Part shown: positions 3,885 through 7,456 of the stretch, one piece after another
Layout: every line of letters starts with the position of its first letter
How positions within the stretch are numbered: the stretch's first letter is position 1
Assembly: GCA_040357565.1 (NCBI GenBank)
Contig: JBDODJ010000004.1
DNA: 64,000 bases
Reading direction: 5' to 3' (one strand)
Source: Cercozoa sp. M6MM
Taxonomy: Eukaryota > Protista > Endomyxa: Ascetosporea
Program-made: the position numbers and the translations under genes
Notes under the pieces: model-generated
The model's input: only the letters and a program-made list of their open reading frames with translations
The model's database searches: none
What the model was told of the DNA's origin: nothing

Positions 3885-4536
3885 TATCTCTATCTCTATC
3901 TATCTCTCTTTGTCTACCCGCATACTGCATACAGGCGGCTCGCACGCTGCGCACTACGCCGGCGGCGGTCGGCGCGACTTTGAGGAGCACCGCCGCAGCG
4001 CCTACGACAGCGGCCGAGCCGGGCAGTCCGAGTACGCGCCGTACGAAGCTCCACGACACTCAGGTCCGCCCCGACGCGAGTACGTCCGTCGTGACGTCCG
4101 TCGAGACGACCGCGCACGCTACGAACGGCGTGACGAGCGACGTGACTACCCGCCCTACGGTAAGCTTGAACTGTGTGTGTGTTGATTGTAGACCAACTGT
4201 GCTCTGACTGACTGCCGGTTGTTGTTGGCACAGAGCGCCGTGAGCACGAGCACGGCCGACGCAGCGACTACGAGCGGCGGCCCTTCGAGTCGCGTCGCGA
4301 GCGCAGTCGCGACCGTGCGTACGACCGCGGTGCAGACCGGCGCGGTACCCCTGCCTCCTGCAGTCCTGCATGTCTCTACAGTGCTTCTTATCTGTGCTGG
4401 CGTAGGCTACGGTGACACCCACAGATCCGAGCGAGCGCCCTACAGACGCGATGCGTACAAACCTCGCGATGAGTACAGAGCGCCGCGCAATGAGTATGCT
4501 GGTCGCTCGCACCGGGATCATGCACACTCTTACTGA
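2630..4536 (+). CDS. Transformer-2/SR45a-like RRM splicing factor with R/D/E/Y-rich tail (start uncertain)
   Basis: Spliced exons: RNP2 VGVFNL, RNP1 SRRFGFAKF, post-RRM motif RSQKPHERTPGNY (cf. Tra2 TKRPHTPTPG.Y), then an Arg/Asp/Glu/Tyr-rich tail ending ...DHAHSY*. Confidence 0.75.
3785..3910 (+). repeat. (TC)n/(TCTA)n microsatellite in intron
   Basis: Visible simple repeat between GT and AG of a Tra2-like intron. Confidence 0.9.
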
Positions 4537-5199
4537 CCTGCCCCGCTCTAACAAGAAAGGTGCCTCTAGCTTTAAGGCGCTACCATATCCCATGGCGGGG
4601 TCAAATGCATTTTTACATAATTTTACAAGCCCGAGCAGCACCGATTTTCTCAGAAGACGACTAAGTTGGCCTATACGATTAGTCTGAAGTCGTGTGCTGA
4701 GTTCTAAGCTCTGCGCCGAGGCCGATTCGCGGTGGCAATGCCGCAATAATGTAACGCAGAAAAGACGATGCTTCATTTTGGCGAATGTAACTGGTCTGAG
4801 AATTGGTCTGTCAGGGTCTTCTTTCCCTGGTATAGATGCTGTGGATTAAGATCTCGACCATGTTTCACCTGCAACGCCCCTTTGTCGCTGTCGCGACTGT
4901 ACAGTTTCTGCATTCTCGATCAGTCGATCGGTCTGACTGCCTCTCGAAGAAATTGATCGATCAATCGCATGACCGCGCACTCACCGACTGATCGCTTCCA
5001 GTTCTGTGTTCCCGTCGCATTTGTTCTTTTGCTCTGCGTTCTGTTCATAATCGACTCGACATTTAGATTGTGCTCCGACGTTGCAAGGAAGACAGACAAG
5101 ACACTAGTAGTCACTAGTAGTCACTTGCGTCAAGTCAGTTTCTCACAAAACGACAGTTGCTGCCTGTGTATCCTATACTTCCTGCACCTGTGACTTTAG

Positions 5200-6062
5200 A
5201 TGGGCAACAAGCAGAGCACCACTGGGCTCGCTGACAAGCTAACAAGCACGTGCGTGATTAACGATGGGGTAAATTTACATGACCTTTGTAAATTTGGTTA
5301 AAAAGATGGTGATCCGGCTGTTCGTTTTCAGGGCCAGAAGCTCACAATTGTCCAGGTTGTCCAGGCCTTTTGGTTCGACGTTGTTGAGGAGAAGCGCTCG
5401 GTATCCACTATCATTCGGAGATGTAGGCCAAAAAATGTGTGGCTTGTGACCAGGACATTGCGTTGGGGCTGTACAATGGGCTGTTTTCGGCACACCCAGA
5501 GTATTTGTCGGTGTTTGGGACGGACGGGCAAAATCGACAACGAGCTGAAGCGCAAATGGTTCGAAATACTCACCCAGCGCTTTTTGTTCACTTTGATCGA
5601 CGATTTGTCAGAGTCGCCTCATTCACATGCTGTCGTCCTTTGTGCAAAACCTTACTGACTTGGAACACTTGGATGCTCGTATCAAGCAAGTAGGCCGCCT
5701 TCATGCCAATATCGGTCTTCCTGTGGCTGCTTACGGGCACCTTACAGAGGTATCGTTGCACTCAAGTAAAAAATCAACTTCTAGAATTTAGGTTTCTAAC
5801 ATTTAGGCTCTGTGTGAGGCACTCGAACTGACCGTGCCAGACCACTTCACGCCTAGCATTGCTTACTCACTGTACTTGAGACTGTCTTGTCACAATCTTT
5901 AGTTTATTTTCTCCGCACGGTTTGCAGAAAGGAAGTGCTCGATGTGTGCGGCAGCCTCATGGTGGAAGAGCAGGTTAAGCATGACAAAAAGGCCTCACGT
6001 CGTCAAAAAATCAAGGAGTAAATTACGCTTAGCTTGTGAGTGTTGAGCTCCGCTAAGGCTAG

Positions 6063-6113
<51 letters not shown>

Positions 6114-6806
6114 GATACAGTAGGTACTCGCCGGTGCAACGAATGCGAGCGCTGCGTAACTCACCGCGCAGCTCGCCAAGTTCAAACACGCGCCGACTGC
6201 CGCGCAAGGATTCTGGTCCCTTGAACATCTCGTCACCTTCCATGTCGTCGCGACGCGTGTCGCTCGCATCCACAATGTCCACTATGTCGGTAGCAAGCTC
6301 TTTTTGCATCAGTATCACTCACAGCACCGTATCTAACCTACTCACTCTTGCAGGTGAAAAGCGATCTTCCCGCCGCTCAAGCTGAGGTTTTAGTGCGCGA
6401 TGACCACTTCTTCGACTTCCTGCGCAACGCGCGCTGTCTCTCGTACTTTCAGTTGGTGCGGCATAATCAGCGCACACATGTAGCTCTGTTAGTCTGGCTC
6501 ATACCTGCGGTGTGCTTTGCGCTGTAGTTTCTGGCGCGCGAACTCGCGTCCGAGAACCTCATGTTCTATCGCGACGTGACTCGCTGGACCGCCTTAAAGG
6601 TACAATCACAATTGAAATGAAGTCATTTAATTCATGCCACTGCAAATAAAAATGTGTGTTACTTTCGCGATAGGAGCCGCGCCGTCGTGTTGAAGAGGCA
6701 CGGCGCATTTTTGACGAATACATTCCTCACGACGCGCGCTCGTACCGCAGCTTGTGTGTGTGCATGTGTGTACACGTGTGTGTATGCATGTGTGTGTGTG
6801 TGTGTG

Positions 6807-6858
<52 letters not shown>

Positions 6859-7456
6859 GACCGATCAACGTCTCGCATGCAACGCGCAACATTCTGATTC
6901 TTCGTTTCCAGGGCAACTCGCCGAGGTAAATATTCAATACCAATTCGCTTTCAATCCTGCCACAAACTCGACCATTCTGTTTTGCGCTCAGTTCCACACC
7001 TGACTTGGACCCTGCTCTCAGTTTCAGCAGCACCAACATGATCTCCAGGTATCCTGAGGGGGGCTGATCTTCAACAAAGTTTTGGTTGAGAAGCTTCAAG
7101 TAAACCATTGGTTGTGTTTAGTCCAGTAGTCTCGCCAATTAGATCAAGCAACAACAACACACTGACAGCGCGGCTCATGCACGACGACGCTTTCGAACCA
7201 GCGTTTTCAAAGGTAAATTCACTCTGAACCTCGTTGTGCGGATGCTCGATCAGCGTCTTAGGTCGTGCAAATCATGCAACATGACCTGTTCCCGCGTTTC
7301 CGCAAGTCGGAGGTTTGCACCGCTTTGTTGGAGTCACTGCAAGGTAAGCTATTTTGCTTCAGGTGCGTGCCTGTGCTGTAGTTGAAACTCGACGGATCGA
7401 GGTGTGCTTTTGTGCTTTTGTGGCCAGGGAGCGAAGACTTCGGAGCGGACTTTTGA
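5200..7456 (+). CDS. Putatively N-myristoylated globin-RGS fusion protein, ~15 exons
   Basis: MGNKQS start; globin VQAFWFDVVEEKRSDIALGLYNGLFSAHPEYLSVF...AQMSRLIHMLSSFVQNLTDLEHLDARIKQVGRLHANIGLPVAAYGHLTEALCEAL...FTPSIAYSLKEVLD; Ser/Arg linker; RGS FLRNARCLSYFQLFLARELASENLMFYRDV...ARRIFDEYIPHDARSPINVSHATR...AFEPAFSKVVQIMQHDLFPRFRKSE. All joins GT-AG and in frame. Confidence 0.85.

Follow-up and report, generated by a model that had tools for sequence, protein, structure and literature searches.

A globin–RGS fusion protein encoded by a 15-exon gene of the amoeba Cercozoa sp. M6MM: a candidate haem-dependent regulator of heterotrimeric G proteins

Gene structure and domain organization

The window analyzed here is a 64,000-nucleotide stretch of DNA from Cercozoa sp. 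M6MM, contig C4 of the 23.6-Mb M6MM assembly. At positions 5200–7456 of its plus strand there is one real gene, which encodes a globin domain joined by a Ser/Arg-rich linker to a regulator of G-protein signalling (RGS) domain. The region holds no long open reading frame (ORF), and its three-frame translation is a run of short coding pieces lying between AG and GT. Splicing these pieces yields 15 exons, separated by introns of 49–118 nt that are of the GT–AG type in all 14 cases, and a single open frame of 1269 nt that encodes 422 residues and ends at the TGA stop at 7454–7456. Residues are numbered here from the Met of MGNKQS. Comparison of exon 4 (46 residues) with 1.84 billion proteins gave two strong matches, the 471-residue P0001 (100% over the exon) and the 386-residue P0002 (87%). 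P0001 is the NCBI entry MES1907241.1, "hypothetical protein MHM6MM_000401 [Cercozoa sp. M6MM]", which is already public and unnamed, with both Pfam domains precomputed. Its residues 50–471 are letter-for-letter equal to our spliced model. An earlier note, made from the DNA letters alone, had proposed about 15 short in-frame exons outside the ORF track, encoding an MGxxxS start and, in succession, globin, Ser/Arg linker and RGS box; the 15 GT–AG exons, their identity to the public protein and the presence of these four parts in one open frame bear this out.

The exons follow the domain order closely. Exon 1 (5200–5268; residues 1–23) begins with M-G-N-K-Q-S-T, which matches the N-myristoylation pattern and is the same in a paralogous gene on contig C23 (described below). 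The globin domain, residues 24–165, starts with exon 2 (5332–5400; residues 24–46; 87% amino-acid identity to the C23 paralogue), which encodes helix A with Trp37 and is helical in the AlphaFold2 model. Helices B to E are encoded by exon 3 (5454–5558; residues 47–81; 91% identity to C23), in which the codon map places Tyr53 at 5472–5474, Phe67 at 5514–5516 and Gln80 at 5553–5555, and which also holds Pro61. Exon 4 (5612–5749; residues 82–127) covers helices E to G and holds Leu84, His112 (5702–5704) and Tyr122 (5732–5734). Helix G runs into helix H in exon 5 (5807–5871; residues 128–149), and exon 6 (5928–6017; residues 149–179) encodes helix H together with the first, basic part of the linker; if its donor were left unspliced, an in-frame TAA would follow directly. 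Exon 7 (6124–6289; residues 179–234) is Ser/Arg-rich linker with an R-K-D-S site and the conserved R-R-V-S-L-A-S-T.

The linker ends in exon 8 (6354–6455; residues 235–268), which also encodes RGS helices 1–2 and aligns with RGS5 from residue 22. Within the RGS domain, residues 250–412, exon 9 (6528–6599; residues 269–292) encodes helices 3–4 with Ser276-Glu277-Asn278 at 6549–6557, exon 10 (6674–6741; residues 293–315) helix 5, and exon 11 (6860–6925; residues 315–337) the helix 5–6 loop with Asn318 (6867–6869), helix 6 and the start of an insert. Exon 12 (6992–7048; residues 337–356; 44% identity to C23) lies wholly within this insert, which ends in exon 13 (7122–7212; residues 356–386) ahead of the start of helix 7. 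Helices 7–9 are completed by exon 14 (7262–7343; residues 387–414), with Asp394 at 7283–7285 and Arg398 at 7295–7297, and exon 15 (7428–7456) encodes residues 414–422 and the stop codon.

Assignment of the globin and RGS domains

Profile and database searches were run by single exon, and full-length searches with the public protein P0001 retrieved through exon 4. On P0001, both Pfam families named in the earlier note scored above cut-off, RGS (PF00615) with 56.4 bits (E 5e-15, cut-off 23.9) and Globin (PF00042) with 44.5 bits (E 2.6e-11, cut-off 22); the paralogue scored 42.5 bits against Globin. Taken exon by exon against Pfam, exon 4 was the sole scoring exon of this locus (Globin, E 0.004), and exon 9 alone had no match among the PDB sequences. 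Scans of the genome with PF00042 and PF00615 did not pick up the locus because its exons are short. A profile built from the Pfam-verified RGS exons of the same genome matched exons 8, 9, 10, 11, 13 and 14 collinearly; the top three exons, among them exon 9 with 17.5 bits and exon 10 with 11.5 bits, scored 17.5, 11.5 and 7.3 bits, whereas the highest score among 3000 shuffled exon peptides was 6.7 bits.

Among PDB sequences, the RGS part matched RGS5 best (3.5e-9), followed by RGS16 and RGS2, and also RGS8 and RGS4. The globin part matched the flavohaemoprotein 1cqx (2.8e-5), then neuroglobin, a globin fused to nitric oxide (NO) synthase, the Hell's Gate globins and Vitreoscilla haemoglobin. 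The AlphaFold2 model has a mean predicted local distance difference test score (pLDDT) of 63.6; both domains reach about 70–90, whereas the N-terminal extension, linker and RGS insert all stay under 50. Foldseek searches with this model, with template modelling (TM) scores normalised to the target, gave 0.78–0.81 for the globin against neuroglobin and Hell's Gate globin (0.73–0.81 when Vitreoscilla haemoglobin is included) and 0.87–0.89 for the RGS domain against RGS16 and RGS8 (0.81–0.89 with RGS4), the RGS structures being those from Gα complexes. Identity of the globin domain is 17–20% to neuroglobin (Foldseek) and about 23% to flavohaemoglobins and single-domain F globins. The Pfam Protoglobin family reached 12–17 bits, below its cut-off of 25, and Pfam found Globin and RGS only in P0001, with no FAD/NAD(P)H reductase domain. 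By these matches, the globin is best assigned as a flavohaemoglobin-type (F/M family) 3-on-3 module that belongs neither to the flavohaemoglobins proper nor to the sensor/protoglobin lineage.

The residues expected of a haem pocket are in place. In a BLASTP alignment to E. coli Hmp, taken from the K-12 record, Tyr53 pairs with Hmp Tyr29 (B10), Pro61 with Pro37 (C2), Phe67 with Phe43 (CD1), Gln80 with Gln53 (E7), Leu84 with Leu57 (E11), His112 with His85 (F8) and Tyr122 with Tyr95 (G5). All seven are unchanged between the C4 and C23 paralogues. The position corresponding to the Hmp Glu at H23 was not alignable by BLASTP. Trp37 falls in the first globin helix of the AlphaFold2 model; together with the Hmp alignment, this accounts for every globin residue that had been claimed at the outset (the helix A Trp, Tyr B10, Pro C2, Phe CD1, Gln E7 and His F8).

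The predicted Gα-binding residues of the RGS domain are likewise retained. Glu277-Asn278 align with the E-N of the S-E-E-N loop in RGS5, RGS16 and RGS2, Asn318 with the switch-binding Asn (V-N-I/L-D) of RGS5 and RGS16, and Asp394 and Arg398 with the D-S-x-x-R of helix 7–8 in RGS5, RGS16 and RGS2. We take the RGS4 equivalents of Glu277, Asn278, Asn318, Asp394 and Arg398 to be Glu87, Asn88, Asn128, Asp163 and Arg167, respectively. Two RGS4 residues are replaced, Ser85 by Ala and Ser164 by Leu. The motifs S-E-N, I-N-V and D-x-x-P-R-F, from which the RGS box had been proposed, are all present and align with RGS5, RGS16 and RGS2. The domain is thus, as judged from these alignments, R4-like with an intact predicted Gα-binding face.

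A paralogous gene and the integrity of the fusion

The C23 paralogue, MHM6MM_001505, carries every exon in the same order and lies on the minus strand at 4497–2237 of C23:12000–18000. Its model has 439 residues, starts with MGNKQS and is identical to the public isoform P0007. Between the two genes the proportion of synonymous differences (pS) is 0.65–0.72, and intron identity is no better than that of shuffled sequence. The proportion of nonsynonymous differences (pN) is 0.11 for the globin and 0.13 for the RGS domain, corresponding to nonsynonymous-to-synonymous rate ratios (dN/dS) of about 0.05 and 0.09, which are rough because dS is near saturation. By these values the two copies are old, with both domains under strong purifying selection. 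We considered the C23 gene as an allelic or haplotype copy and rejected this, given a pS of about 0.7 and unalignable introns.

The comparison also bears on individual exon joins. Intron 13 is missing in C23, so that exons 13 and 14 are contiguous there, and exon 7 is divided there by an extra intron. One intron lost and one gained between the paralogues prove two exon joins, and since the extra intron splits exon 7, this exon is read as coding in C23 too. The uninterrupted C23 equivalent of exons 13 and 14 matches positions 80–113 of Pfam RGS (E 0.0016). All four annotated C23 isoforms span from the globin to the RGS box, and they differ in intron retention or in the choice of the 5′ end, as we would expect from transcript-based annotation updating. 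The M6MM genes were called by funannotate train, predict and update with transcriptome reads (PMC11069148). Two of the four isoforms, P0002 and P0009, retain intron 10 and end within the RGS box, which would leave a globin whose RGS domain is cut short and presumably inactive; regulated intron retention or noise may account for this.

These data permit the fusion to be weighed against an annotation artefact, in which two neighboring genes, one for a globin that ends at the TAA behind exon 6 and one for an RGS protein, were merged both by the gene predictor and by our model. Unspliced intron 6 does give an immediate in-frame stop in both paralogues, and exon 7 contains Met codons. However, such a stop is expected of any phase-2 GTAA or GTAG donor, the intergenic gap would be only about 100 nt, half of it a (TG)n repeat, and the linker is open and in frame in both C4 and C23, with shared motifs, despite saturated synonymous sites. 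Given in addition that every annotated paralogue isoform crosses the globin–RGS junction, we regard an artefact as very improbable. That both old paralogues have kept the paired domains under strong selection points to a functional link more than to accidental tethering.

N-terminus, linker and RGS insert

The public C4 model starts 49 codons upstream of the MGNKQS start, with three small exons at 4768–5136 on the plus strand that encode 49 residues from an ATG at 4768 and are probably 5′ untranslated region (UTR). This extension is rich in Cys, Trp and Phe, has a pLDDT of 25–37 and lacks a counterpart in any C23 isoform. MGNKQST is identical in the two genes, and the main C23 isoform, P0007, begins with it. 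A splice acceptor lies immediately before the ATG at 5200, and in the C23 gene, too, an intron precedes the ATG by a few bases. We thus favor the MGNKQS start, because the extension is not conserved in the paralogue and MGNKQST is; the C4 and C23 genes probably share a conserved 5′-UTR intron, and the start codon of the public C4 model is probably over-extended. The Met-Gly-x-x-x-Ser/Thr motif fits in both paralogues, and N-myristoylation of the predicted terminus seems somewhat more probable than its absence. The protein has no transmembrane segment.

The interdomain linker (residues 166–249, 84 residues) spans 5977–6398 on the plus strand, including introns 6 and 7. It is of low complexity, with Ser, Thr, Arg, Lys and Pro making up 56% of its residues, and its pLDDT is below 50. 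Its length is 96 residues in C23, and its pN of 0.34 between the paralogues corresponds to a dN/dS of about 0.4. Within this fast-evolving segment, R-R-V-S-L-A-S-T is kept in both paralogues just ahead of the RGS box, and the R-K-x-S site is also conserved.

The Ser/Pro/Thr-rich insert of the RGS domain (residues 333–378, about 46 residues) lies between helices 6 and 7 and is encoded at 6912–7188 on the plus strand, by the whole of exon 12 with parts of its neighbors, exons 11 and 13. All PDB RGS alignments are interrupted by it, the gap running from query positions 378–383 to 427–428. With a pLDDT below 50 it is predicted to be disordered, and it is also present, less conserved, in C23. By the known topology of RGS4 with Gαi1, the helix 6–7 loop sits at the end of the bundle facing away from Gα.

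A putative model for haem-dependent GTPase activation

The four parts of the 422-residue protein, namely the MGNKQS signal, the F-type globin, the 84-residue disordered linker with its basophilic-kinase sites and the RGS domain with its 46-residue insert, enable us to propose a putative mechanism. Bound at the membrane, the protein would act as a GTPase-activating protein (GAP) on one or more of the many Gα subunits of the amoeba. Haem ligation or oxidation state (O2, NO or CO; ferric versus ferrous) would alter the availability of the RGS domain or its GAP activity. Given a long and flexible linker, control would be likelier if the globin docked reversibly onto the RGS domain, or by oligomerisation or by phosphorylation of the linker, at R-K-D-S (Ser209) and R-R-V-S (Ser225), than by a rigid helical relay of the kind seen in bacterial globin-coupled sensors, which the length, fast evolution and predicted disorder of the linker make unlikely. 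We estimate at roughly 45% the probability that the protein is such a haem-based sensor–effector with state-dependent GAP activity. Its parts differ in strength: haem binding by the globin is quite probable, GAP competence of the RGS domain nearly as probable, and dependence of the GAP on the haem ligand is a tentative proposal. More tentative still is the proposal that this is the first haem-based gas receptor to work directly on the cycle of heterotrimeric G proteins, in which a globin anchored at the membrane would switch a fused RGS GAP on or off in response to O2, NO or redox state.

Several points weigh against this sensor–effector model. The globin is, by its profile scores, outside the sensor (protoglobin) family, and the pair of Tyr B10 and Gln E7 is a hallmark of NO dioxygenases, so the globin may be catalytic rather than a switch. 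The long, fast-evolving linker, predicted to be disordered, weakens the case for direct allostery. Coupling of the two domains has no comparative support, because no homologue of the same architecture was found outside the M6MM genome in searches insensitive to distant relatives. The globin–RGS junction in the C4 copy rests on annotation and on the paralogue comparison, and translation from the upstream ATG of the public model would bury Gly2, preventing myristoylation.

The most serious competing explanation is that of an RGS domain with constitutive GAP activity and a globin that, tethered to the membrane, works as an NO dioxygenase, as a nitrite reductase or as a store of O2. The fusion would then merely co-localise the globin with G-protein signalling, and any regulation would proceed through linker phosphorylation, not gas. 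The nearest globins to this domain, namely flavohaemoglobins, Vitreoscilla haemoglobin and neuroglobin, are in line with this explanation, as are Tyr B10, Gln E7 and Tyr G5, which match Hmp, an NO dioxygenase, and the conserved R-R-V-S and R-K-x-S sites of the disordered linker. However, an enzyme cycle would need a partner, since the protein has no reductase domain, and the two domains have been held together under strong purifying selection in both old paralogues, which suggests a functional link. We consider co-localisation rather unlikely, and even if it were the sole purpose of the fusion, the conserved paralogue pair indicates that the fusion was selected.

Two further explanations are considerably less probable. 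The protein might be a scaffold in which one or both domains lack the ancestral activity, the globin being haem-free or the RGS domain binding a partner other than Gα. Haem-free globins do exist, as in RsbR and photoglobin (PMC8717448), and the RGS box carries Ala and Leu at the positions of RGS4 Ser85 and Ser164 as well as the 46-residue insert. Against a scaffold stand the retention of His F8, Phe CD1, Tyr B10 and Gln E7, invariant between the paralogues, and of the Glu-Asn pair, Asn318, Asp394 and Arg398; moreover, the insert falls in the helix 6–7 loop, which on the known RGS4 topology lies away from Gα. Loss of activity is improbable. Slightly less probable again is that the globin serves as a second Gα binder dependent on haem redox state, which would hold GDP-bound Gα after RGS-accelerated hydrolysis in the manner of an inhibitor of guanine nucleotide dissociation (GDI). 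Both by sequence and by fold, neuroglobin ranks with the best matches, and its GDI activity on Gαi1, for which Glu residues of neuroglobin are needed, is documented (PMC4842972), but the identity to neuroglobin is just 17–20%, and zebrafish neuroglobin is without GDI activity, so this is not a general property of globins. The sensor–effector model accordingly remains our preferred reading at the probability given above.

Comparison with known systems

Haem-globin sensors drive chemotaxis receptors, cyclases for c-di-GMP and cAMP, and kinases, and RGS proteins are steered by seven-transmembrane, DEP, PDZ, PX and other modules. A close parallel in layout is provided by the globin-coupled sensors of bacteria and archaea (HemAT, EcDosC/BpeGReg and AfGcHK), which have an N-terminal haem globin and a C-terminal signalling output controlled by haem ligand binding (PMC7475203). 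Unlike the M6MM protein, they use a sensor/protoglobin-like globin rather than the F/M type; their outputs are methyl-accepting chemotaxis protein, GGDEF, kinase or STAS domains and never RGS; and their linkers are short and helical, in contrast to 84 disordered, Ser/Arg-rich residues. The O2-sensing adenylate cyclases of trypanosomatids, such as Leishmania HemAC, resemble it as protist globins fused to an enzyme of second-messenger signalling (PMC7719234). The cyclase makes cAMP directly, whereas the M6MM protein would act one level up, on the GTPase cycle of Gα.

Each domain also has its own relatives. E. coli Hmp, R. eutropha FHP and Vitreoscilla haemoglobin provide the best globin matches and have Tyr B10, Phe CD1, Gln E7, Leu E11, His F8 and Tyr G5 in common with the M6MM globin, but at an identity of about 23%, and flavohaemoglobins carry a FAD/NAD reductase in the place taken here by the RGS domain. 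The R4 RGS proteins (RGS4, RGS5, RGS8, RGS16 and RGS2) are the best sequence and fold matches of the other half and share the Glu-Asn pair, the switch-I Asn and the Asp/Arg of helix 7–8; they are small proteins with an amphipathic N-terminal helix only, whereas the M6MM protein adds a globin, a long linker and the insert. In plant AtRGS1 a sensory module is fused to an RGS box, and the signal modulates GAP activity rather than nucleotide exchange; the concept is similar, with a seven-transmembrane sensor in place of a soluble haem domain. Among animal globins, neuroglobin links haem redox state to heterotrimeric Gα, ferric human neuroglobin being a reported GDI for Gαi/o (PMC4842972), and globin X is anchored to the membrane through myristoylation of Gly2 (PMC7475203). 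Both are single-domain globins without RGS, unlike the M6MM protein with its covalently fused GAP domain.

In a full-text search of the literature, no paper joining globin and RGS domains was found, in keeping with the earlier note, which was aware of no description of the architecture. RGS is not mentioned in a review of globin diversity (PMC7475203) or in a paper on protist globins, and the papers on the M6MM genome (PMC11069148, PMC13746701) mention neither globin nor RGS. Searches with the whole protein, the globin region and the RGS region, together with ESM Atlas, gave no protein of the same architecture outside M6MM, these searches being word-indexed and insensitive to distant relatives. 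By these searches, the fusion of a haem-globin input to an RGS output appears new, and it would be akin in its working to a globin-coupled sensor or a receptor-type RGS protein. It bridges two fields without a direct link, the closest forerunner being neuroglobin's debated GDI activity. If haem state does control the GAP, the protein would represent a new way for eukaryotic cells to feed O2, NO or redox state into G-protein signalling, and a one-protein route from ambient oxygen to Gα, for example in aerotaxis or in adaptation to a fish-gill habitat. To our knowledge, the oxygen sensor of amoeboid aerotaxis, as studied in Dictyostelium, is still unidentified, and the globin–RGS protein would then be a concrete candidate for it. 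The hypothesis is directly testable, since the two domains are of small size, soluble and readily assayed, and the organism is in culture.

Genome context and related loci

M6MM is a marine amoeba that has been assigned to Apofilosa (Rhizaria) and was recently given the name Lemnamoeba sinaloensis (PMC11069148, PMC13746701); it is kept in culture (PMC13746701) and has a small genome. The assembly is nearly at chromosome level. It contains at least 63 exon-level Pfam matches to Gα on about 25 contigs and 33 RGS exon matches, so candidate substrates for the RGS domain are plentiful; this Gα repertoire is very large for a genome of 23.6 Mb. Introns 6 and 10 of the C4 gene consist mostly of (TG)n, as a perfect (TG)23.5 microsatellite at 6064–6110 inside intron 6 and an imperfect (TG)52 at 6753–6856 that fills intron 10, in agreement with the unusual richness in simple sequence repeats described for this amoeba (PMC13746701).

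The globin–RGS subfamily in M6MM comprises two intact members, on C4 and C23, plus a stop-containing fragment on contig C133. The latter, at about 4151–3972 on the minus strand of C133:3500–10500, is a lone copy of exons 4–5 with 71% amino-acid identity, in-frame stops and no recognisable neighbor exons, and is probably a pseudogene fragment of the subfamily. The long open frames that lie upstream of further RGS exons, on contigs C1223, C21, C3 and C25, contained no globin. A divergent globin is encoded in one exon of 129 residues at 4556–4170 on the minus strand of C2:79000–87000 (15.9 bits against Pfam Globin, under the cut-off), a short way downstream of a response-regulator/receiver-like sequence, and has a paralogue at C385:5929–6427; within 4 kb downstream of the C2 and C385 globins, no RGS match was significant (best 6.2 bits, E 0.48). 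The next-best database match to exon 4 after the two strong ones, at 31% identity, is P0003, a protein of 1029 residues that is unrelated to the fusion and contains seven tandem globin domains.

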